Part shown: piece by piece, positions 41,567 through 52,799 of the stretch
Layout of the letters: each line of letters starts with the position of its first letter
How positions within the stretch are numbered: position 1 is the stretch's first letter
Source: Rebecca billardiae RCC1528
Lineage: Eukaryota > Protista > Haptophyta
Direction: 5' to 3'
Length of the DNA: 64,000 bases
Assembly (NCBI GenBank): GCA_965240325.2
Contig: OZ251233.1
Coordinates: forward strand, 2,046,001 to 2,110,000
Position numbers and translations under genes: made by a program
Notes under the pieces: model-generated
Databases searched by the model: none
The model's input: only the letters and a program-made list of their open reading frames with translations
What the model was told of the DNA's origin: nothing

Positions 41567-41715
41567 GCTGAGGCCAGATGATCGGGAGATCGGGAGATCG
41601 TCGTCGGAGCGGTGCAGATGGGACGAAACAATTTGCTCTCGTGGGACTGACCGCCGATTCTATGTCGTTTTATTTCACTGAATTGCAGGCCCTGCACCTG
41701 TGCATCCAGTGTACG

Positions 41716-43179
41716 ATGGAGACGGCGCGATGGCGGGCGCAATCACCACGTTCTCCGGGGGCGGCGGTGCGGCTGGCCGACTTGCCGCCCGAGGTCGTGG
41801 GGCGCGTGCTCGGCTTCCTTGAAGATGTTGGCGACCTCGCCGCCGCGAACGCCGCCACCCGCCTCTTCCGCGGCATGCCGCTCGAGCACGCGCTGCGCGA
41901 GCGCGTGCGCATGCGCGGGCACGCGCTGCCGACGGCGCCGTCTGCAGGCGTGCGCACATGGACAGAGGAGTTGTTCGCGCGTGAGCGCGTGAGCGAGCTC
42001 GCTCGCGCACACACGCACGTCCTGGCCGCCGGCGGCGCCGCCTCCGACTTCACGTTCAGCGCGTTTGTCGACGCGGAGGGCGGCCTGTACGCGTGCGGCG
42101 AGCATCGCGTCTGCGAAGCGTCCGTGTGGCGCATTCGGTGCCCCACGGCGACTGGCCTCTGCGAGCAGCTGGGCTCGCCCGCACTCGTCCCGACGCGCGT
42201 CGCCGCGCTCTCGGGCGTGCGCGTGCGCGCCGTGGCTGCCGGCAGCGCGCACCTGCTCGCGCTGAGCGACGCCGGCGCCGTGTACGCGTGCGGCGAGAAC
42301 TGGTTTGGCCAGCTGGGCGTGGGCGACCGGACCGAGCGGCGGTTGTTCGCGCCGCTGCCGGCGCTGCGCGCGGAGCACGTTGTCGGCATCTCCGCCGGGA
42401 TCCACCACAGCCTCGCGCACACCGCGGGCGGGTGCGCGCACAGCTGGGGCGGCAACTACCGCTCGCAGCTGGGCCGCGCCGCAGCGGACGGCCTCGAGCT
42501 GGAGCCACGGCGCGTGGAGGGGCTGGGCGGCGTGCGCGTGGGCGGCGTGGCGGCGGGTGGGTACTTCACGCTGCTGCTCTCGGCGTGCGGGGCCGTGTAC
42601 TGGTGCGGCAGCGCGCACGCGCGCGGTGCCAAGCAGGACCAGCCCACACCGACGCGCATCGAGGCGCTCGCTGCCGTGCGCGCCGTGCACGTGAGTGCGG
42701 GCCTGCAGCAGAGCCTTGTCGTGGACGCCGCGGGCGGCGTGCACTCCTTTGGCGTCGGCACCGCCGGCGTGCTGGGCCACGGCGACGAGTCCGACCAGCG
42801 CGCGCCCAAGCGTATCGGGGCGCTTGCGGGCGTGCACGCCGTGCGCGCGTGCGCGGGCATTGACGGCAGCGCGGTGCTGTGCGCAGACGGCAGCGTGCAC
42901 ACGTTCGGTGCCAACCAATGCGGCCAGCTCGGCGTGGGGCAATGCACGTGCCACTGGGTACCGCAGCCCGTGGGCGCCCTCGCGCACGCACGGGTCGTCG
43001 GCTGCTCGCTCGGCCGCGCCCACGCGCTCTTTCTGACGGCGGACGGCGGCGTGCACTCGTGCGGCAAGCAGTCGGGCGCGCTCGGCCACGGCGTTGGCCT
43101 GGGCACGGGTATGTCCGCCCTGAGGGCTCCGACCCGTGTGGCGCAGCTGGCGCCGCTCTGCAGCCGTGCGCTGCACTGA
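41716..43179 (+). CDS. F-box plus RCC1-repeat protein
   Basis: LADLPPEVVGRVLGFL F-box; repeated VAAGSAHLLAL...GAVYACGENWFGQLGVG RCC1 blades. Confidence 0.88.
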   Translation: METARWRAQSPRSPGAAVRLADLPPEVVGRVLGFLEDVGDLAAANAATRLFRGMPLEHALRERVRMRGHALPTAPSAGVRTWTEELFARERVSELARAHTHVLAAGGAASDFTFSAFVDAEGGLYACGEHRVCEASVWRIRCPTATGLCEQLGSPALVPTRVAALSGVRVRAVAAGSAHLLALSDAGAVYACGENWFGQLGVGDRTERRLFAPLPALRAEHVVGISAGIHHSLAHTAGGCAHSWGGNYRSQLGRAAADGLELEPRRVEGLGGVRVGGVAAGGYFTLLLSACGAVYWCGSAHARGAKQDQPTPTRIEALAAVRAVHVSAGLQQSLVVDAAGGVHSFGVGTAGVLGHGDESDQRAPKRIGALAGVHAVRACAGIDGSAVLCADGSVHTFGANQCGQLGVGQCTCHWVPQPVGALAHARVVGCSLGRAHALFLTADGGVHSCGKQSGALGHGVGLGTGMSALRAPTRVAQLAPLCSRALH

Positions 43180-44304
43180 CTATCTACGTCGTCGGCCTTG
43201 CCTGCAGGCAGGCGGGAGGCACCGCGCGCACAGCAGTCAGCAGCTAACATGAAGCCGGTCGGCGCCGTCACTGGACTACTAGTACTACTAGGAACAATGA
43301 GGCCGGTCGAATAATAACGACGTTTTTTGATTATTAGGCACGCGGGCTGCGGCACGCCTCGGGAATCGAGAAGGCGCATGTTGTTATACCTTTTTGCTGC
43401 TGAGCGCGCATCATAGTATAGGGACGATGTCGTTGCGATTTCCACTACGCGTACTGTATCAGACGCCGCCTTTAATTTTTTTCCTACTCGACGATGACCA
43501 TATCGGCATCCGCGCTCGGACCACGAGGAACCGCGATGAGTGCTTTCGCCGCCGCGCCGCGTGCGCTCGGCACACACGATTGAGTAATAATAGAGTACGA
43601 CTAGTACAGTCCGCTCTCCGAACAATTGATTATTGCCTTACTATGGAGAGCACACCTGCACTGCTGCACATCACACCTTCTTCTGGCCGCCTAGGCTTGC
43701 ATTCTGACGGGCACCTGCGGCCCCAGCACTCTCCATTCGGTCGAGCTGCACCCACCCATCATGACTTCAGCCGGGTGGGTGACAATTGGAGGACTCCTCT
43801 GGGCAGCACGTGAAGCCGGCCAACTCGGACGTGACCGTGGCCGACAGGCTCTCGGCTGGCTCCCACACCCCTTTCAGCCCAGCTTGTAGCACAGCGCGCC
43901 GCGCTGATTTTCGGCCTCGTGTGCTGTGCTACAGGGCGCATACCCAATCAGCAGGTGGGCCGCTGGCAGGCTAGGTGCATCTGGTGCACTGTGGTGGCCA
44001 TTCCCCGACCACCACCCGCAGAGACGTGGCCTGCGCACTGAAACCGCACTGCTCACGCCAGGCTGTACTGCTAGGCTGGCTGCTAGGCAGAGTATCAAAC
44101 ATTCAAAGGCCATGGCAGCTGCAGCGCCAGGGCCCACTATACAGCTGCTACACTCCCAGCCAGCCAGCCCACAGCCTGCTCAGGGGGTGAATTTCCATCT
44201 CTGCCTACCCTCGTGGTTGCCGCCGTGCCGCCGTCGCTGGCGTAGAGCCGCGCGCGGCGCTGGCGCGCCAGACGCGCCCGGTTGGGCAGCGCAGGCACCC
44301 TCAG

Positions 44305-44424
44305 CGGCCAGGACGACGACTTCCTCAACGGCAAGGGCGACGACTTCCTCTGCGGCCAGGGCGACGACTTCCTCAACGGCAAGGACGACGACTTCCTCAA
44401 CGGCAAGGGCGACTACTCCCTCAA
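44305..44424. repeat. 24-bp minisatellite, 5 copies (CGGCAAGGGCGACGACTTCCTCAA)
   Basis: Units start at 44305, 44329, 44353, 44377 and 44401. Confidence 0.9.
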
Positions 44425-45686
44425 CTCGGCAAGGCCACTAGGCCGCGCACACCGGCCCGGGCGACCACATCCACTACCTGCACTACGGCATCAACTTGAA
44501 CAGCCTCGGACGACGACGACGCGGGCAACTACATGATGACCAAGGCCGACGACGACTGCAAAACAGCGGCATCCCCGGGCGCCTACTACCTCAGTGACCG
44601 TGTGATCAGCATCGGTTACGACGACTCCCTCACCCGCGGCCAACGCGCTCCGACATCCTCCATTAACTCCATTCAGTACTTCGACAGACGAATCAGGAGA
44701 GCTGCGCCCTCGTGCCTGTGTCTTTAAATCATAGAATTGGTCCAGGCTCCAGCACCCCCGCGCAGCACCTGTCAGCCGGTTGTGCGCCTGCACTCAATTT
44801 CTCTGACTGACTCAGCCCACACACTCACTCCCGCCCAGGCTCATACCGCCACCTTGACCTGGTCTGTAAGGGCTATAGGTGCAGTAACAGATAGCAGGCA
44901 GCAGTGGGACTCAAACAGTGACTGAGCTGGTATAGACAGCCAAACACAAGGGTAACCAATTGTTGAGATCACTGTAGTACTGTATGACAAACGAGCGCGC
45001 TGCTGCAGGAGGCAAAGGCCGCGCGCGACACGCAGAATGGCGCTCAGCCGGCGTGGCTCGACGACACTGCTGGCACTCGCACTCGCACGCACAGCGACGG
45101 CTGCACGTCTACGCCGTGCAGGTTGTGCTCGCCCAGCGCCTGCAGACCAGTGGGCCATCCACGGTGCGTGCCGTTGCCGCGCCGTCGTGCACGAGCGGCC
45201 GTGCGCAGCGACGACTGCATCGACGCGCGTCTCGCCGTGCGCCTCGGTGGGCCTTGCAGAAGTGCCGCGCTGCCGCGCCTGGCTTAATCGCACGCGCGAC
45301 TGCGGCGCGCCACCGCGGATGACTGGCGTTAGTCGGCGCTGAACAGCCAACTCGTCGCATCGTCGTCGGGTCTGCCGGCCCTGGCGGCAAGCTTCTCTGT
45401 CGCGTCCTAGACGCGCTGTGTTCGACCAGCCCCACCGGGACAAGGCCGCCAGGCCCCCGCAGTTATATGCCGCGCATGCAACGCACCGCCGTCGCACGGC
45501 AACTCAACGGCTGCAGCGCCTCGCGCCGCGCACGCGCCAAGTGCCCATCGACGCCAACCCGCGCCCTCGCTTCATTTTAGTTCCGGCGCGACCGCGACCG
45601 CGAGGTTCCGTTTGGCGCGAATTCTCGGTGCGGTCCGGAGCCAACGCGTGTCCGGGCGCCGCGGTGGCGTCGCTCACAAGTCACGA

Positions 45687-47510
45687 ATGGCGGCGAACGC
45701 CTCCGCGGCGGTCAGGCTCCTCTGGCGCAAGTCGGGGCGCGGCGACGCGCGTGCGACGTTCCTTCTGGCGCGGCGGGCTGAGGATGGCGACGGTGTCGCG
45801 CAGGACGAGCGCGAAGCCTTTCGTCTGTACACCCTCGCCGCTGAGCGCGGCTTTGCCGATGCGCAGGCGAGAATGGGCCACGTCTACGTGAACGGCTCAC
45901 TTGGGCAACCAAAGGACTTGGAGGCAGCCGCGCGCTGGTACCGACTGGCGGCCGACCAGGGCGTTGCTCAAGCGCAGTACATTCTGGGCGTGTGCTACGC
46001 GCGTGGCAAGGGTGTGCAGCAGGATTGGGGCGAGGCAATGCGCTGGTTACGGCTGGCGGCAGAGCAGGGCGATGCTCAAGCGCAGTGCGGTCTGGGCACG
46101 TGCTACGCGCAAGGCGATGGTGTGCAGCAGGACTTGGGCGAGGCAGCGCGCTGGTACCGGCTGGCGGCCGAGCAGGGCGATGCTCAAGCACAGTACAATC
46201 TGGGCGTGTGCTACGCGCAAGGTAAGGGAGTGCAGCAGGATTGGGGCGAGGCGGCGCGCTGGTACCGGCTGGCGGCCGAGCAGGGCTATGCTCACGCGCA
46301 GTGCGGTCTGGGCACGTGCTACGCGCAAGGCGATGGTGTGCAGCAGGACTTGGGCGAGGCAGCGCGCTGGTACCGGCTGGCGGCCGAGCAGGGCGATGCT
46401 CAAGCGCAGTGCGGTCTGGGCACGTGCTACTCTCAAGGCGATGGTGCGCAGCAGGATTGGGGCGAGGCAGCGCGCTGGTACCGGCTGGCGGCCGAGCAGG
46501 GCGATGCTCAAGCACATTACAATCTGGGCGTGTGCTACGCGCAAGGTAAGGGAGTGCAGCAGGACTTGGGCGAGGCGGCGCGCTGGTACCGGCTGGCGGC
46601 CGAGCAGGGCGATGCTCAAGCGCAGCACAATCTGGGCACGTGCTACGCGCAAGGCGATGGTGTGCAGCAGGACTTGGGCGAGGCGGTGCGCTGGTACCGG
46701 CTGGCGGCCGAGCAGGGCGATGCTGAAGCACAGTACAATCTGGGCACGTGCTACTCTCAAGGCGATGGTGCGCAGCAGGATTGGGGCGAGGCGGTGCGCT
46801 GGTACCGGCTGGCGGCAGAGCAGGGCTGTGCTCAAGCGCAGCACAATCTGGGCGCGTGCTACTCTCAATGCGATGGTGTGCAGCAGGATTGGGGCGAGGC
46901 GGTGCGCTGGTACCGGCTGGCGGCAGAGCAGGGCTGTGCTCAAGCGCAGCACAATCTGGGCGCGTGCTACTCTCAAGGCGATGGTGTGCAGCAGGATTGG
47001 GGCGAGGCGGTGCGCTGGTACCGGCTGGCGGCAGAGCAGGGCTGTGCTCAAGCGCAGCACAATCTGGGCGCGTGCTACTCTCAAGGCGATGGTGTGCAGC
47101 AGGATTGGGGCGAGGCAGCGCACTGGTACAACTCGGCTGCTGCTAGCGGGAGCGCACGTGCACACATCTCGCTGGGGTCGCTGAGGCTGCGGGGTGAGGG
47201 AGTGGAGCGTGACGTGGAGGAGGGCGCGCGGCTGCTGCGCTCCGGCCAAGAGCTCGATCCCGACCTCAGAGATCCAGCGTGCGATGTGCTGGCGTCGTTA
47301 GCTGGAGCGCGTGAGGTGGTCTCCCTGTGCTGCATCGCCTGCGGACAGACAGGCCGTGGTCTGAAGAAGTGCGAGCGGTGCCACGTGGCGGTCTTCTGCT
47401 CGCGTGAGCACCTGCGCAGCTCGTGGAAGGTGCACAAGCCCCACTGCAACGAGTGGTGCGCACAGGCAGCAGGTGAAGCCTCTGCCGCAGCTGCGCCCGC
47501 TGCCGTGTAG
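45687..47510 (+). CDS. Sel1-like repeat (14 repeats) plus MYND zinc finger protein, paralog 1
   Basis: 36-aa repeats GDAQAQYNLGVCYAQGxGVQQDWGEAARWYRLAAEQ; C-terminal CIAC...CERC...FCSREH...W..HKPHC. Confidence 0.93.
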   Translation: MAANASAAVRLLWRKSGRGDARATFLLARRAEDGDGVAQDEREAFRLYTLAAERGFADAQARMGHVYVNGSLGQPKDLEAAARWYRLAADQGVAQAQYILGVCYARGKGVQQDWGEAMRWLRLAAEQGDAQAQCGLGTCYAQGDGVQQDLGEAARWYRLAAEQGDAQAQYNLGVCYAQGKGVQQDWGEAARWYRLAAEQGYAHAQCGLGTCYAQGDGVQQDLGEAARWYRLAAEQGDAQAQCGLGTCYSQGDGAQQDWGEAARWYRLAAEQGDAQAHYNLGVCYAQGKGVQQDLGEAARWYRLAAEQGDAQAQHNLGTCYAQGDGVQQDLGEAVRWYRLAAEQGDAEAQYNLGTCYSQGDGAQQDWGEAVRWYRLAAEQGCAQAQHNLGACYSQCDGVQQDWGEAVRWYRLAAEQGCAQAQHNLGACYSQGDGVQQDWGEAVRWYRLAAEQGCAQAQHNLGACYSQGDGVQQDWGEAAHWYNSAAASGSARAHISLGSLRLRGEGVERDVEEGARLLRSGQELDPDLRDPACDVLASLAGAREVVSLCCIACGQTGRGLKKCERCHVAVFCSREHLRSSWKVHKPHCNEWCAQAAGEASAAAAPAAV

Positions 47511-48377
47511 CCCCAGCCGCAGCACAGATCACGTATTCGCCGCGTAGTGGCAATTTTTTGCCGATCAGACTCGATCATATATCAGCCTAGATTGTGATCA
47601 GCCATCAGGGCGCAGGCTGACAGTGAGTGACACTGCGCGGGAGCCGCATGCGGCCATGTCCGCCATGTGTGTGATACGTGACCGCGTAGCCGTAGGCCGT
47701 AGTACCTCGCTAGTCGCTCGGTCAGAGTATGCGGCAGAGCAGCCCGTAAGACGCTGCCGGGCTACTATATGTACAGTCACGTTCTTGTCTAAGAGGACGA
47801 GGAGAGCGCCAGTGCACCATACCGCACTCATCACAACAGCTAAGCTTCCAGCAGGCTCCATCTAAAGCTGCATCAAATGGTGCATTCTCAGACGATCGAT
47901 AGTGTTTCAATAAATACCTCGGCAAGGCGGCGCTGCGCTTGCGCGAAGGTACGCCTGCTTCCTCGCTCGTCCACAGCGTGAGCCCCGAGACGATCGCATC
48001 GTGCGCCAGGCGTGCGCTCACGGCTGAGGCCAGCGCGGACTGCTCATCGCCTCAGAATTGCCTCATTCTCAGGCGATGCTCGCATCGCATGCGCGCTGAT
48101 TGTAGGCGCGGCAAAGTCCGTGTGAAGTCGACGACGAGCAAGCTGCGGGGCACAGAGCGAAGCATGGCTGCGTTTATATGCTGCGCATGCAACGCGGCGC
48201 CTTCGCACGGCAACTCAACGGCTGCAGCGCCTCGCGCCGCGCACGCGCCAAGTGCCCATCGACGCCAACCCGCGCTCTCGTTCGGGCGACCGCGAGGTTC
48301 CGTTTGGCGCGAATTCTCGGTGCGGTCCGGAGCCAACGCGTGTCCGGGCCGCTGGTGGCGTCGCTCACAAGTCACGA

Positions 48378-50207
48378 ATGGCGGCGAACGCCTCCGCGGC
48401 GGTCAGGCTCCTCTGGCGCAAGTCGGGGCGCGGCGACGCGCGTGCGACGTTCCTTCTGGCGCGGCGGGCTGAGGATGGCGACGGTGTCGCGCAGGACGAG
48501 CGTGAAGCCTTTCGTCTGTACACCCTCGCCGCTGAGCGCGGCTTTGCCGATGCGCAGGCGAGAATGGGCCACATCTACGTGAAGGGCTCACTTGGGCAAC
48601 CAAAGGACTTGGAGGCAGCCGCGCGCTGGTACCGACTGGCGGCCGAGCAGGGCGTTGCCAACGCGCAGGGCGTTCTGGGCGTGTGCTACGCGCGTGGCGA
48701 GGGTGTGCAGCAGGATTGGGGCGAGGCAGTGCGCTGGTACCGGCTGGCGGCCGAGCAGGGCGACGCTGGAGCGCAGTGCGGTCTGGGCACGTGCTACGGA
48801 CGTGGCAACGGTGTGCAGCAGGATTGGGGCGAGGCAGCGCGCTGGTACCGGCTGGCGGCCGAGCAGGGCGACGCTGGAGCGCAGTACAATCTGGCCCTGT
48901 GCTATGGACGTGGCGACGGTGTGCAGCAGGATTGGGGCGAGGCAGCGCGCTGGTACCGGCTGGCGGCCGAGCAGGGCGACGCTGGAGCGCAGTGCGGTCT
49001 GGGCACGTGCTACGGACGTGGCAACGGTGTGCAGCAGGATTGGGGCGAGGCAGCGCGCTGGTACCGGCTGGCGGCCGAGCAGGGCGACGCTGGAGCGCAG
49101 TGCGGTCTGGGCACGTGCTACGGACGTGGCAACGGTGTGCAGCAGGATTGGGGCGAGGCAGCGCGCTGGTACCGGCTGGCGGCCGAGCAGGGCTATGCTC
49201 GAGCGCAGGTCAATCTGGGCTCGTGCTACTCGCATGGCGGGGGAGTGCAGCAGGATTTGGGTGAGGCGGCGCGCTGGTACCGGCTGGCGGCCGAGCAGGG
49301 CGACGCTAACGCGCAGTACAATCTGGGCTCGTGTTACGTGCAAAGTGAGGGTGTGCAGCAGGATTGGGGCGAGGCGGTGCGCTGGTACCGGCTGGCGGCC
49401 GAGCAGGGCGTTGCTGACGCGCAGCACAATCTGGGAACGTGCTACGCGCAAGGCGACGGTGTGCAGCAGGATTGGGGCGAGGCGGTGCACTGGTACCGGC
49501 TGGCGGCCGAGCAGGGCGACGCTAACGCGCAGTACATTCTAGGCACGTGCTACGCGCAAGGCGACGGCGACGGTGTGCAGCAGGATTGGGGCGAGGCAGC
49601 GCGCTGGTACCGGCTGGCGGCCGAGCAGGGCGACGCTAACGCGCAGTACAATCTGGGCGTGTGCTACGCGCGTGGCGACGGTGTGCAGCGAAATTGGGAC
49701 GAGGCGGTGCGCTGGTACCGGCTGGCGGCCGAGCAGGGCGATGCTCAAGCGCAGCACAATCTGGGCGCGTGCTACTCTCAAGGCGACGGTGTGCAGCAGG
49801 ATTGGGGCGAGGCAGCGCACTGGTACAACTCGGCTGCTGCTAGCGGGAGCGCACGTGCACACATCTTGCTGGGGTCGCTGAGGCTGCGGGGTGAGGGAGT
49901 GGAGCGTGACGTGGAGGAGGGCGCGCGGCTGCTGCGCTCCGGCCAAGAGCTCGATCCCGACCTCAGAGATCCAGCGTGCGATGTGCTGGCGTCGTTAGCT
50001 GGAGCGCGTGAGGTGGTCTCCCTGTGCTGCATCGCCTGCGGACAGACAGGCCGTGGTCTGAAGAAGTGCGAGCGGTGCCACGTGGCGGTCTTCTGCTCGC
50101 GTGAGCACCTGCGCAGCTCGTGGAAGGTGCACAAGCCCCACTGCAACGAGTGGTGCGCACAGGCAGCAGGTGAAGCCTCTGCCGCAGCTGCGCCCGCTGC
50201 CGTGTAG
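48378..50207 (+). CDS. Sel1-like repeat (14 repeats) plus MYND zinc finger protein, paralog 2
   Basis: Same architecture. Duplicated block about 45463-47519 versus 48174-50216 includes about 200 bp of upstream DNA. Confidence 0.93.
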   Translation: MAANASAAVRLLWRKSGRGDARATFLLARRAEDGDGVAQDEREAFRLYTLAAERGFADAQARMGHIYVKGSLGQPKDLEAAARWYRLAAEQGVANAQGVLGVCYARGEGVQQDWGEAVRWYRLAAEQGDAGAQCGLGTCYGRGNGVQQDWGEAARWYRLAAEQGDAGAQYNLALCYGRGDGVQQDWGEAARWYRLAAEQGDAGAQCGLGTCYGRGNGVQQDWGEAARWYRLAAEQGDAGAQCGLGTCYGRGNGVQQDWGEAARWYRLAAEQGYARAQVNLGSCYSHGGGVQQDLGEAARWYRLAAEQGDANAQYNLGSCYVQSEGVQQDWGEAVRWYRLAAEQGVADAQHNLGTCYAQGDGVQQDWGEAVHWYRLAAEQGDANAQYILGTCYAQGDGDGVQQDWGEAARWYRLAAEQGDANAQYNLGVCYARGDGVQRNWDEAVRWYRLAAEQGDAQAQHNLGACYSQGDGVQQDWGEAAHWYNSAAASGSARAHILLGSLRLRGEGVERDVEEGARLLRSGQELDPDLRDPACDVLASLAGAREVVSLCCIACGQTGRGLKKCERCHVAVFCSREHLRSSWKVHKPHCNEWCAQAAGEASAAAAPAAV

Positions 50208-50523
50208 CCCCAGCCAGTATACGCTGATCATCACTACAGCACGTTAATGATGTATCGATCATATCGCGTCATTATTGTCAGTCATCTGATCATGTCGCCC
50301 GACTCACGCTGCGCCGGCAGCGGCGCCCCTGCCCCTGGCCCTGGCGGCTGACGCGGGGCCGCGGCGCCCCGGAGCGGCGGAGCGGCGAGCCCGCGAGGCC
50401 GATTCTGACGAATGATCCGATATGATGACGACGAATTGCAACTACGATGCTGCTACTAATTGAGTAGCAGTCGTCATTACATCAGCATAAGCCACAGTGA
50501 ACAAAAACGGGATTATCGTTATA

Positions 50524-52609: not shown

Positions 52610-52662
<53 letters not shown>

Positions 52663-52715
52663 TAGATAGATAGATAGATATATATATAGATATATATATA
52701 GATATATATATATAT

Positions 52716-52761
<46 letters not shown>

Positions 52762-52799
52762 CGATCGATCGATCGATCGATAGATAGATAGATAGATAG
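52610..52799. repeat. Compound microsatellite (TA)n-(GATA)n-(GATC)n
   Basis: Directly visible. Confidence 0.95.

Follow-up and report, generated by a model that had tools for sequence, protein, structure and literature searches.

A tandem pair of Sel1-MYND genes with eight hypervariable positions per repeat in the haptophyte Rebecca billardiae

Among the systems that resemble the genes described here are the NLR genes of fungi. In the HET-e/HET-d/NWD genes of Podospora, near-identical WD40, ANK or TPR repeats occur in varying number, positive selection acts on few positions (on the concave binding face in TPR and ANK repeats), and the reshuffling of units is seen as a source of new binding surfaces (Dyrka et al. 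2014, PMC4986451). The LRR-ROCO and NB-ARC-TPR candidate receptors of Ectocarpus are clustered and evolve by birth and death; their selected LRR sites are concave, each repeat occupies one exon, exon shuffling has been proposed as the mechanism, and positive selection on the TPR exon is weak (Zambounis et al. 2012, PMC3341825). The slr genes of Helicobacter are likewise under positive selection (Ogura et al. 2007, PMC1941758). Near-identical repeat DNA together with few hypervariable codons at the binding face is a hallmark of fast-adapting recognition repertoires, and this regime has so far been found mainly in fungal NLRs and in brown-algal ROCO and NB-ARC genes. Full-text literature searches yielded no paper describing a hypervariable Sel1-MYND family.

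The DNA analysed is a window of 64,000 nt from Rebecca billardiae RCC1528 (Haptophyta), contig OZ251233.1, 2,046,001-2,110,000 of the forward strand, and all positions below refer to this window (Table 1). A preliminary description of the window had reported two Sel1-MYND genes with 14 repeats each. This count agrees with the present annotation: in each gene, Pfam recognizes 13 Sel1 stretches and one zf-MYND, and the AF2 model adds an N-terminal helix pair. For Sel1 (PF08238, cut-off 30.7 bits), gene 1 reaches 366.1 bits (E = 4.8e-113) and gene 2 351.6 bits (E = 1.8e-108); for zf-MYND (cut-off 22.7 bits), the values are 29.3 and 30.6 bits, respectively.

Table 1. Positions of the two Sel1-MYND genes and their parts within the 64,000-nt window
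Feature	Position	Strand	Remarks
Upstream block of gene 1 (promoter or 5' leader), common to gene 2	45463..45686	+	Homology start
Gene 1, Sel1(14)-MYND, 607 aa, single exon	45687..47510	+	Continuous ORF, ATG start at 45687
Gene 1 N-cap: cap helix, repeat 0, degenerate repeat 1	45687..45926	+	
Gene 1 array, 11 regular 108-bp units (units 2-12)	45927..47114	+	
Gene 1 unit 13, degenerate C-cap Sel1 unit	47115..47222	+	
Gene 1 MYND zinc finger, residues 548-587	47328..47447	+	Pfam PF01753
Spacer between genes 1 and 2, unique, 655 bp	47519..48173	none	
Upstream block of gene 2	48174..48377	+	Homologous to 45463-45686
Gene 2, Sel1(14)-MYND, 609 aa, single exon	48378..50207	+	ORF with ATG start at 48378
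Gene 2 array, 11 units (units 2-12)	48618..49811	+	2-codon insertion in unit 10
Gene 2 MYND zinc finger	50025..50144	+	Pfam PF01753, residues 593-631 of the longer ORF

The two genes belong to a lineage-specific Sel1-MYND family of about 130 loci or more, which are dispersed and also arranged in tandem clusters; the genome search gave at least 144 matches to the C-cap plus MYND among 150 candidates scored. The layout is fixed and consists of an N-cap with the common motif AAV.LL.RKSGRGDARATFLLARR, 7-26 Sel1-like units, a degenerate C-cap unit, a short helical linker and the MYND zinc finger. In the 66 genes analysed, the caps are common to all, whereas the number of Sel1 units varies from 6 to 26 (7 to 26 in complete genes). 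Genes 1 and 2 are the closest pair sampled in the family. The domain content of both genes, as of nine long paralogues, is limited to Sel1 and MYND, with no NOD, TIR or other signalling domain. The two proteins are 88% identical in amino acid sequence.

Concerning the repeat units, Tandem Repeats Finder delimits two 108-bp arrays of 11.1 copies each with 90% and 87% matches and scores of 1777 and 1635, far above chance. The mean pairwise identity among interior units is 0.89 (nucleotides) and 0.82 (amino acids) in gene 1 and 0.87 and 0.79 in gene 2. A nearly invariant helix-B half and variable helix-A positions 2, 4, 7-8, 11, 14-15 and 17 had been noted beforehand, and both are found again in the unit table, including the alternative residues that had been listed for the variable positions. 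The codons of RWYRLAAEQG and VQQDWGE are nearly invariant across units, also at synonymous sites: the scaffold codons CGC, TGG, CTG, GCG, CAG and GGC are each present in 21 of 21 units, and non-preferred codons are likewise fixed (GCT in 20 of 21, GGT in 18 of 21). The variable helix-A sites correspond to unit positions 13, 15, 18-19, 22, 25-26 and 28, with an entropy of 1.4-2.2 bits in the gene pair. The same eight positions are hypervariable in the whole family (627 units of 66 paralogues), where they reach 2.1-3.7 bits as against at most 0.7 bits at 21 scaffold positions; the 627 units carry 550 distinct eight-residue signatures, whereas one scaffold string is common to 271 of them. A target of a diversity-generating retroelement was considered and rejected, the variable codons differing at all bases, at first and second positions, and not specifically at adenines; the spread of the family over about 130 or more loci also disfavours this reading.

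The AF2 model of gene 1 (mean pLDDT 90.7) contains 14 helix pairs, among them the N-terminal pair missed by Pfam. The predicted fold is a right-handed alpha-alpha superhelix like that of solved Sel1-like repeat structures; the top Foldseek matches are the solved Sel1 proteins 6ok3 (E = 2e-30, TM 0.78 by target), 4bwr, 8sxq (TM 0.90 by target), LpnE, SEL1L and HcpC. A signal peptide or membrane anchor was rejected by inspection. In the model, helix A comprises unit positions 14-26. When L20-G21-x2-Y24 of the unit is aligned with L7-G8-x2-Y11 of the TPR consensus, the variable sites fall on TPR positions 34, 2, 5, 6, 9, 12 and 13. These TPR positions are concave and contact the ligand (PMC1261162). 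The eight positions make up a single stripe that follows helix A and its flanks and probably lines the concave binding groove, a mapping based on helical periodicity and the TPR alignment. It is consistent with the earlier suggestion that the variable sites lie on a groove-lining helix A, of which they would occupy one face.

The MYND finger aligns ligand for ligand with that of SMYD2, and seven of its eight zinc ligands are canonical for the C4-C2HC pattern. The ligands of gene 1 (C549, C552, C562, C565, C571, H575, H583, C587) are invariant in 37 family members; the sixth is a His (REH) in all 37 members aligned, as opposed to the Cys (VEC) of SMYD2. His is able to bind zinc, and MYND fingers bind PxLxP-type peptides of partner proteins; with His in place of Cys as its sixth ligand, this finger is assumed here to bind zinc and peptides.

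The duplicated block extends from 45463 to 47518 and aligns with 48174-50215. In agreement with the preliminary description, caps and MYND region are almost identical at the DNA level (99-100%), whereas the interior 108-bp arrays are only about 87% identical. In bins of 54 bp, 52-54 bases are identical at the N-cap (45679-45948) and in the C-terminal region (47077-47518), but only 42-51 in the interior (45949-47076). According to codon counts, 3 of 240 nt differ in the N-cap and 1 of 393 nt in the C-cap plus MYND, and the finger has the same protein sequence in both genes. The upstream blocks are about 93% identical (6.6% diverged), with indels of 19 and 1 nt, and the spacer is not homologous to the sequence that follows gene 2 on its 3' side. 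The last 251 bp of the spacer (47923-48173; spacer bases 405-655) are one arm of a dispersed inverted-pair repeat, which was matched at no fewer than 35 loci with 71-74% identity (81% in one shorter match), the copies lying mostly as inverted pairs around 520 bp apart.

Within the array of gene 1, unit 11 has the same sequence as unit 12, and unit 10 is 1 nt away from both (units 10-12, 108 aa, are 97-100% identical); in gene 2, the same holds for units 5 and 6, with unit 3 at a distance of 1 nt. An interior unit is most similar to another unit of its own gene, whereas edge units 2, 12 and 13 are most similar to units of the paralogue, and unit 13 is identical at 107 of 108 bases between the genes as against around 60 of 108 in comparison with interior units. 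Interior units have been duplicated and lost within each array, and edge units remain orthologous. The terms shuffled and recombination-driven, under which the repeats had been introduced, apply only in part, at the level of whole units: the arrays have no unit-for-unit correspondence, and different units were amplified by duplication and loss in each gene. They find no counterpart within units, where the 19 distinct units of the window showed no recombination signal in a PHI-like permutation test (p = 0.58, at low power), nor in a donor locus: searches of the genome with the 970-bp arrays and with two-unit blocks gave, among the 40 candidates scored per search, none above 87-89% outside the locus.

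The caps, formerly called invariant, are indeed near-identical, but they are not simply invariant. Their synonymous divergence between the genes (0-0.016) is far below both that of the array scaffold codons (0.108) and the divergence of the upstream non-coding DNA (6.6%), a contrast suggestive of cap gene conversion or of a mixed history. Such near-identity may result from gene conversion between neighbours, or from a recent duplication with rapid array turnover. The synonymous and upstream divergence (7-11%) suggests an older duplicate with homogenised caps. A very recent duplication, followed by extremely fast interior divergence through unit gain and loss plus selection, appears to us possible, though with the lower probability of the two. 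It would account for the mere 4 of 633 nt that differ between the caps, but hardly for an upstream block of 224 nt that is 6.6% diverged and contains indels. The edge units are still recognizable as orthologues and the identical units within each array indicate ongoing amplification, both as expected after a recent event; the scaffold synonymous divergence of positionally matched interior units (0.108), however, is equal to that of any two units within a gene (0.12-0.14), and every shared interior unit would have to be lost from either copy while both still have 14 repeats. The best gene 1 match of every gene 2 interior unit is at most 92% identical, which counts against recency, whereas in every close gene pair, regardless of cap identity, the identity of best-matching units levels off at 0.85-0.92, which counts in its favour.

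With respect to selection, dN/dS at the variable sites had been proposed as a check, and its outcome supports the initial suggestion on this point: at the eight variable codons dN/dS is about 2 by three methods, as against 0.3-0.4 elsewhere, and the scaffold is under purifying selection. Parsimony counts gave an omega of 1.3-3.1 per site at the eight codons, 192 independent close unit pairs an omega of 2.0 (95% CI 1.75-2.29) versus 0.40 elsewhere, and a maximum-likelihood codon model an omega of 2.19 versus 0.29 (2 delta lnL = 31.5 against omega = 1); these estimates derive from short units, a weak tree and paralogous repeats with possible recombination, dS may be depressed by codon-usage selection, and the eight sites were picked post hoc from the data, the same sites emerging in independent subsets. 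Non-synonymous change in the eight codons exceeds the synonymous rate of four-fold scaffold codons by a factor of 2.3. Within the pair, pN/pS at these codons is 2.1 in gene 1 and 1.5 in gene 2, and four edge units that correspond by position between the genes, as orthologues, differ by 9 non-synonymous codon changes, 7 of which fall on the eight positions (synonymous changes: 3).

The genes could also constitute an ordinary fast-turnover repeat family without adaptive diversification, in which concerted evolution (unequal crossing-over, conversion) homogenises the scaffold, the eight sites drift neutrally as unconstrained surface, and values of dN/dS above 1 arise spuriously from a depressed dS together with a poor tree. 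We consider this quite improbable. The scaffold codons are strongly biased (GC3 of 0.87), few synonymous changes are seen at those with two-fold degeneracy, and set against their own local pS the eight codons reach only 1.58 (CI 1.28-2.02); nevertheless, omega exceeds 1 by three methods, including the comparison with four-fold sites only and the likelihood test, and NG86 counting is conservative under transition bias. Furthermore, the generic Sel1/TPR consensus is likewise unconstrained at these helix A positions (PMC1261162), but the exposed helix B residues R3, R6, E10 and Q11 are frozen (at most 0.6 bits), so exposure alone does not explain the variation, and the composition of the variable sites (GC12 of 0.44, with many E, N, Q, D, Y and H residues) is far from a GC-rich neutral expectation. 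It is extremely improbable that gene 2 is an artefact of the assembly or of haplotypes, for although near-identical tandem repeats are difficult to assemble, the two copies share a contig (the assembly comprises 41 contigs and 72 Mb) and have a unique 655-bp spacer between them and unrelated 3' flanks, their arrays differ by 13% and their upstream blocks by 6.6% with indels, a 151-nt contig of an independent run crosses the junction of spacer and copy 2 (48119-48269) with one mismatch (among public sequencing runs, one contained 5% of the region's words, as short fragments), and the genome contains further tandem clusters of the family.

Relatives were sought in several collections. A profile search of 1.84 billion representatives, with a profile that contained the last Sel1 unit, returned a single whole-module match among the best 150, P0158, most others being Sel1 arrays. 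A word-index protein search with the full-length sequence returned an excess of generic Sel1 proteins, most of them bacterial, and with the C-terminal region, both as a region and stand-alone, it gave no match in a collection that is length-windowed and seemingly lacks the proteins of this genome. No relative was found in the viral contigs searched, and only MYND-level matches in the metagenome contigs searched.

Taken together, the two genes are quite likely the most recently related sampled members of a large, lineage-specific Sel1-MYND family with a hypervariable groove stripe on a frozen scaffold and a constant MYND finger; the pair, being the youngest sampled, therefore offers the most direct view of the first steps of divergence. 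Each protein would be a soluble superhelical solenoid, in which an almost frozen scaffold, composed in every 36-residue unit of helix B, the loop and those helix A residues that serve packing, alternates with nothing but small changes, whereas the eight-position stripe would line the concave groove and set ligand specificity. The constant MYND finger could dock all members onto a common partner, in the way MYND fingers bind PxLxP-type peptides, such that the family would act as an adaptor repertoire with many specificities and one output. Its genes multiply in tandem and at dispersed sites, and its arrays turn over by unit duplication and loss. By analogy to the systems introduced above, a role in immunity or allorecognition is conceivable. 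In its full form, this would mean a NOD-free intracellular recognition repertoire, in which about 130 or more germline solenoids sense variable non-self ligands (viral or intracellular bacterial proteins) or mating or self partners and all signal via one MYND-docked partner; at present we regard this as rather unlikely. If true, it would represent a new innate recognition architecture, independent of NLRs, in a unicellular alga, and a tractable entry to virus or partner sensing by marine microalgae. Even otherwise, the family would provide a naturally occurring library in which Sel1 solenoids vary on a single fixed scaffold, of use in the study and engineering of binding specificity.

Compared with known Sel1-like repeat proteins (SEL1L/Hrd3, Helicobacter Hcp, Legionella LpnE/LceB, E. 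coli c5321), the fold is the same according to Pfam and Foldseek. Those proteins, however, are encoded by single genes or small families, have diverged repeats and are mostly secreted or luminal; they have no DNA-homogeneous arrays, MYND finger or expansion to more than 100 genes, all three of which are present here. Closer in architecture are the ESM Atlas clusters 'Sel1 repeat/MYND finger' (Eukaryota/Haptophyta), which have the same domain layout, and P0158 (Logan assemblies), which shares layout and N-cap motif and is 50% identical in C-cap, linker and MYND, whereas its repeats are ordinary and diverged, without the 108-bp DNA periodicity, and its finger has the canonical Cys ligand. We know of no expansion or hypervariability in these protist relatives. 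Among MYND proteins (SMYD1-3, DEAF1, ZMYND11/BS69, ETO), the likeness is confined to the finger, which here scores above the Pfam cut-off and can be aligned to SMYD2; it differs in its sixth ligand, His, and is fused to a Sel1 array, whereas a SET or SAND domain is found there.

With the Ectocarpus receptors, the family shares repeat modules, gene clustering and birth-and-death evolution in an alga. The differences are the distribution of repeats, one per exon there and in intronless, continuous ORF arrays here, and the ROC-COR or NB-ARC signalling domain there, in place of which only MYND is present here.

A further resemblance is to the fungal NLRs, with which the preliminary description had already compared the repeats, a comparison that is apt as regards the evolutionary regime (PMC4986451), although the NOD domain is missing here. 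Common to both are DNA-homogeneous repeats, a varying number of repeats (7 to 26 units among the Sel1-MYND paralogues of this one genome), a large duplicating family and selection at few positions per repeat. The fungal criterion is more than 85% amino acid identity across 100 residues or more (Dyrka et al. 2014); the interior means of the two genes, 0.82 and 0.79, are slightly lower, whereas the 108 aa of gene 1 units 10-12 exceed it at 97-100%. The fungal proteins possess a NACHT or NB-ARC domain and an N-terminal effector domain, neither of which occurs in the Sel1-MYND genes. What differs here is the repeat type, Sel1, the constant module, a C-terminal MYND that replaces the NOD, and the lineage, the host being an alga instead of a fungus.

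The duplicated block of the two neighbouring Sel1-MYND genes extends from 224 nt 5' of the ATG to 8 nt beyond the stop codon. Between the copies, the upstream non-coding part is ~93% identical (6.6% diverged, plus one 19-nt and one 1-nt indel), the N-cap is identical at 52-54/54 sites per bin and the part from the last unit to the block end at 53-54/54, whereas the interior arrays are identical at 42-51/54. These bin identities and the codon table of the units confirm the core of the preliminary description, i.e., near-identical caps, differing interior repeats and position-specific variation.

Features of the Sel1-MYND gene pair and its surroundings (positions in the window)
Feature	Position	Strand	Remarks
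Adjoining upstream ORF with RCC1 repeats	41578-43179	+	533 aa; RCC1-like domain (Pfam E = 4e-55); no relation to the Sel1-MYND family
24-bp tandem repeat	44299-44434		5.6 copies; upstream of gene 1
Duplicated block, copy 1	45463-47518	+	homologous to 48174-50215
Gene 1	45687-47510	+	intronless ORF, 607 aa; first ATG yielding the family-common N-terminus
MYND finger with His as sixth zinc ligand, gene 1	47328-47447
Spacer end	47923-48173		251 bp; dispersed repeat
Duplicated block, copy 2	48174-50215	+	homologous to 45463-47518
Gene 2	48378-50207	+	intronless ORF, 609 aa; first ATG yielding the family-common N-terminus
MYND finger with His as sixth zinc ligand, gene 2	50025-50144
(ATAG)n microsatellite	52610-52799		48 copies; downstream of gene 2

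Pfam recognizes 13 Sel1 repeats per gene (366 bits in gene 1, 352 bits in gene 2; cut-off 30.7 bits) and a C-terminal MYND finger in both (zf-MYND, 29.3 and 30.6 bits; cut-off 22.7 bits). The 14 repeats per gene counted previously are nevertheless correct, since the AlphaFold2 model of gene 1 (alignment of 36 paralogues, mean pLDDT 90.7) contains 14 helix pairs besides a single cap helix, a linker of two helices, and the zinc finger. Foldseek matches of the model are solved Sel1-like repeat proteins (6ok3, 4bwr, LceB (8sxq), LpnE, SEL1L, HcpC). The protein has no hydrophobic N-terminus and is therefore probably soluble and intracellular.

According to Tandem Repeats Finder, each gene contains 11.1 copies of the 108-bp unit, with 90% and 87% matches. 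Residues are numbered within the unit from the A of AARWYRLAAEQG; in the model, residues 34-36 plus 1-10 form helix B, residues 14-26 helix A, and residues 27-33 the loop. Among the 21 regular units of both genes, the scaffold codons are near-fixed including their synonymous sites. This extends to codons that are not the preferred ones, with GCT occupying position 14 in 20/21 units, GGT position 29 in 18/21, and CAA encoding every Gln at positions 15 and 26. Positions 13, 15, 18, 19, 22, 25, 26, and 28, by contrast, exhibit 3-7 different residues each, and correspond exactly to the helix A positions 2, 4, 7-8, 11, 14-15, and 17 previously listed as variable.

The arrays changed by duplication and loss of units within each gene, with anchored edges, because the nearest relative of interior units 3-11 always lies within their own gene, and only units 2, 12, and 13 have their best partner at the same position of the other gene. 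Units 11 and 12 of gene 1 have the same sequence, 1 nt away from that of unit 10; in gene 2, units 5 and 6 likewise coincide, and unit 3 deviates from them by 1 nt. Synonymous divergence at scaffold codons of positionally matched interior units amounts to 0.108, on a par with that of unit pairs taken from within one gene (0.12-0.14), and to 0-0.016 in the caps. The interior arrays are 87% identical between the two genes and 84-85% identical to arrays of unlinked paralogues. In the genome, two-unit blocks reached at most 89% identity beyond their own gene among the candidates scored, such that no recent donor locus was found among these.

Taken together, the upstream divergence, the interior and cap values, and the array identities favour an older tandem duplicate with a neutral divergence of ~7-11%, in which gene conversion would have homogenised both caps. 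A very recent duplication, after which all interior units were replaced, is the less probable history; it has in its favour that in other close gene pairs the best-match unit identity saturates at 0.85-0.92, whatever the identity of the caps. Of the shuffling by recombination proposed previously, turnover of units within each gene and a probable gene conversion of the caps are retained; a PHI-like test gave no signal of recombination inside units. That the second copy is an assembly artefact is very unlikely, since the copies are set apart by a unique spacer of 655 bp, are followed by unrelated 3' flanks, and differ by 13% in their arrays, and since the junction of spacer and copy 2 is spanned, with one mismatch, by a contig of an independent run.

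The end of this spacer belongs to a dispersed repeat with at least 35 loci that are 71-74% identical (81% in one shorter match). Two inverted arms of ~210 bp, situated ~520 bp apart, are present at most of these loci, an arrangement that looks MITE-like; the spacer carries a single arm, which directly abuts the start of copy 2 homology at 48174.

The gene pair belongs to a very large family within this eukaryotic genome (72 Mb, 41 contigs, ~68% GC). A six-frame search with gene 1 yielded at least 126 matching pieces of 60-81% identity on many contigs, and a search with the last unit, linker, and MYND region at least 144 matches among 150 candidates scored, ~130 or more of which span nearly the whole module at ≥46% identity. 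In this module the pair is 99-100% identical, the next best among the matches listed being 83%; the pair is the youngest duplicate sampled and exposes the contrast between caps and array. The 66 genes extracted from 70 retrieved loci have the N-cap motif, degenerate C-cap unit, linker, and MYND finger in common, and contain 6-26 Sel1 units (7-26 in complete genes). The longest members contain Sel1 and MYND as their only Pfam domains; no NACHT, NB-ARC, TIR, or kinase domain was found in them. All eight zinc-ligand positions of the MYND finger are invariant in the 37 members aligned, and the sixth ligand is His (REH) in all of them, whereas SMYD2 and other MYND fingers possess the canonical Cys. 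Some members look broken: at one locus (L031, G000:C10:2888000-2891000) MYND lies in another frame than the Sel1 array and the open frame is 143 aa long, and several C-terminal-module matches contain stop codons, some of which may be the natural stop. This is consistent with birth-and-death evolution.

Across 627 full units of the family, entropy is 2.1-3.7 bits at the same eight positions and ≤0.7 bits at 21 positions of the scaffold. As the family singles out the same sites as the gene pair, their choice is no artefact of the latter. The eight residues form 550 different signatures, while one scaffold string is common to 271 of the 627 units. Four estimates agree that non-synonymous exceeds synonymous change at the eight codons. 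Parsimony counting, with a FastTree phylogeny of 594 unique units, gave omega values of 1.3-3.1 per site against global dS, and sites 22, 18, 25, 15, and 26 are significant also against their own dS; most scaffold codons are significantly below 1. In 192 non-overlapping pairs of nearest-neighbour units, on average 6 nt apart, the ratio is 2.0 at the eight codons (bootstrap 95% CI 1.75-2.29; 1.58, 1.28-2.02, against their own pS) and 0.40 at the scaffold. A maximum-likelihood codon model (GY+F3X4, 140 random units, fixed topology) gave omega values of 2.19 and 0.29, respectively, and fixing omega at 1 for the eight codons cost 15.75 log-likelihood units (2*delta lnL = 31.5). The parsimony counts further yield a non-synonymous rate per site at the eight codons that exceeds the synonymous rate of four-fold scaffold codons 2.3-fold. 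Within the pair, pN/pS at these codons is 2.1 in gene 1 and 1.5 in gene 2, and in the four edge units with clear positional orthology 7/9 non-synonymous codon changes fall on the eight positions, versus 3 synonymous changes. The dN/dS check suggested previously thus gave omega ~2 at the eight codons and 0.3-0.4 at the scaffold. Diversifying selection is well supported but not proven, because the units are short, the tree is weak, the paralogous repeats may exchange sequence, codon bias is strong, and the eight sites were picked after inspection of the data. In the 66 genes, the eight codons moreover have a higher AT content than the remaining unit (GC12 0.44 vs. 0.69), and their GC3 of 0.62, compared to 0.87 at scaffold codons, suggests that their turnover is too rapid for the codon-usage equilibrium of the genome to be reached.

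The variable sites of helix A are spaced i, i+3, i+4, i+7, i+10, i+11 and thus occupy one helix face; the interleaved A14, A16, L20, G21, C23/Y24, and G27 are small or hydrophobic packing residues. We take L20-G21-x2-Y24 to correspond to the TPR signature L7-G8-x2-Y11, which would place the variable sites at TPR positions 34, 2, 5, 6, 9, 12, and 13; Foldseek matches to consensus TPR proteins (34-37% identity) are consistent with this register. According to Magliery and Regan (PMC1261162), TPR positions 2, 5, 9, 12, 13, 33, and 34 are the most variable, all on the concave face, and HOP contacts its ligands at 2, 5, 6, 9, 12, and 13. The variable residues, mostly polar or aromatic, would accordingly line the concave groove; the exposed helix B residues R3, R6, E10, and Q11 are frozen across the family units. 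Of the previously proposed location in the helix A groove, the single helix face follows from the spacing of the sites along helix A of the model, and the groove itself from the TPR alignment.

As to evolutionary mechanism, the data are best read as a diversifying repertoire of binding surfaces, carried by a frozen scaffold and joined to a constant MYND output module, a reading that is in our view rather probable. The earlier interpretation as a recombination-driven variable sensor is partly supported, namely for the diversifying sites, with recombination reduced to within-gene turnover of units and probable cap conversion; an immune or allorecognition function of the family, proposed by analogy, has a low probability.

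In the ESM Atlas, clusters auto-named 'Sel1 repeat/MYND finger' are found in Eukaryota, with Haptophyta as the commonest labelled phylum. A profile of the C-terminal module against 1.84 billion representatives yielded, among the matches listed, one relative with the full module (P0158, 490 aa, from two Logan assemblies). It shares the N-cap motif and is 50% identical in C-cap, linker, and MYND, but its sixth ligand is the canonical Cys, and its Sel1 repeats are of the ordinary, diverged kind and lack 108-bp DNA periodicity. No relatives were found in viral contigs, and JGI metagenome contigs gave only MYND-level matches. From these results, the layout appears to predate the genome studied, whereas both the expansion and the arrays, homogeneous yet hypervariable, appear to be specific to the lineage.

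Full-text literature searches gave no description of an expanded Sel1-MYND family; species-specific expansions of MYND-containing alpha-solenoid proteins have been noted, with no further analysis, in green algae (PMC13126933). Positive selection is known for Helicobacter Sel1 genes (PMC1941758), which are, however, single genes with diverged repeats. The high-internal-conservation repeats of fungal NLRs consist of near-identical WD40, ANK, or TPR units, vary in repeat number, and exhibit positive selection at concave-face positions (Dyrka et al. 2014, PMC4986451). The likeness to them claimed in the preliminary description extends to the near-identical units and to selection at few positions, but there is no NOD domain, and mean amino acid identity between units (0.79-0.82 in the gene pair) lies just below the fungal threshold of 85%. 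Fungal NLRs and the Ectocarpus candidate receptors (Zambounis et al. 2012, PMC3341825) carry a NOD or ROC domain, of which the present family has neither, and the one-repeat-per-exon structure of Ectocarpus is absent, since the arrays are intronless. On these defining features the family falls outside both groups, while its evolutionary regime matches that of the fungal NLR repeats and resembles that of the Ectocarpus receptors.
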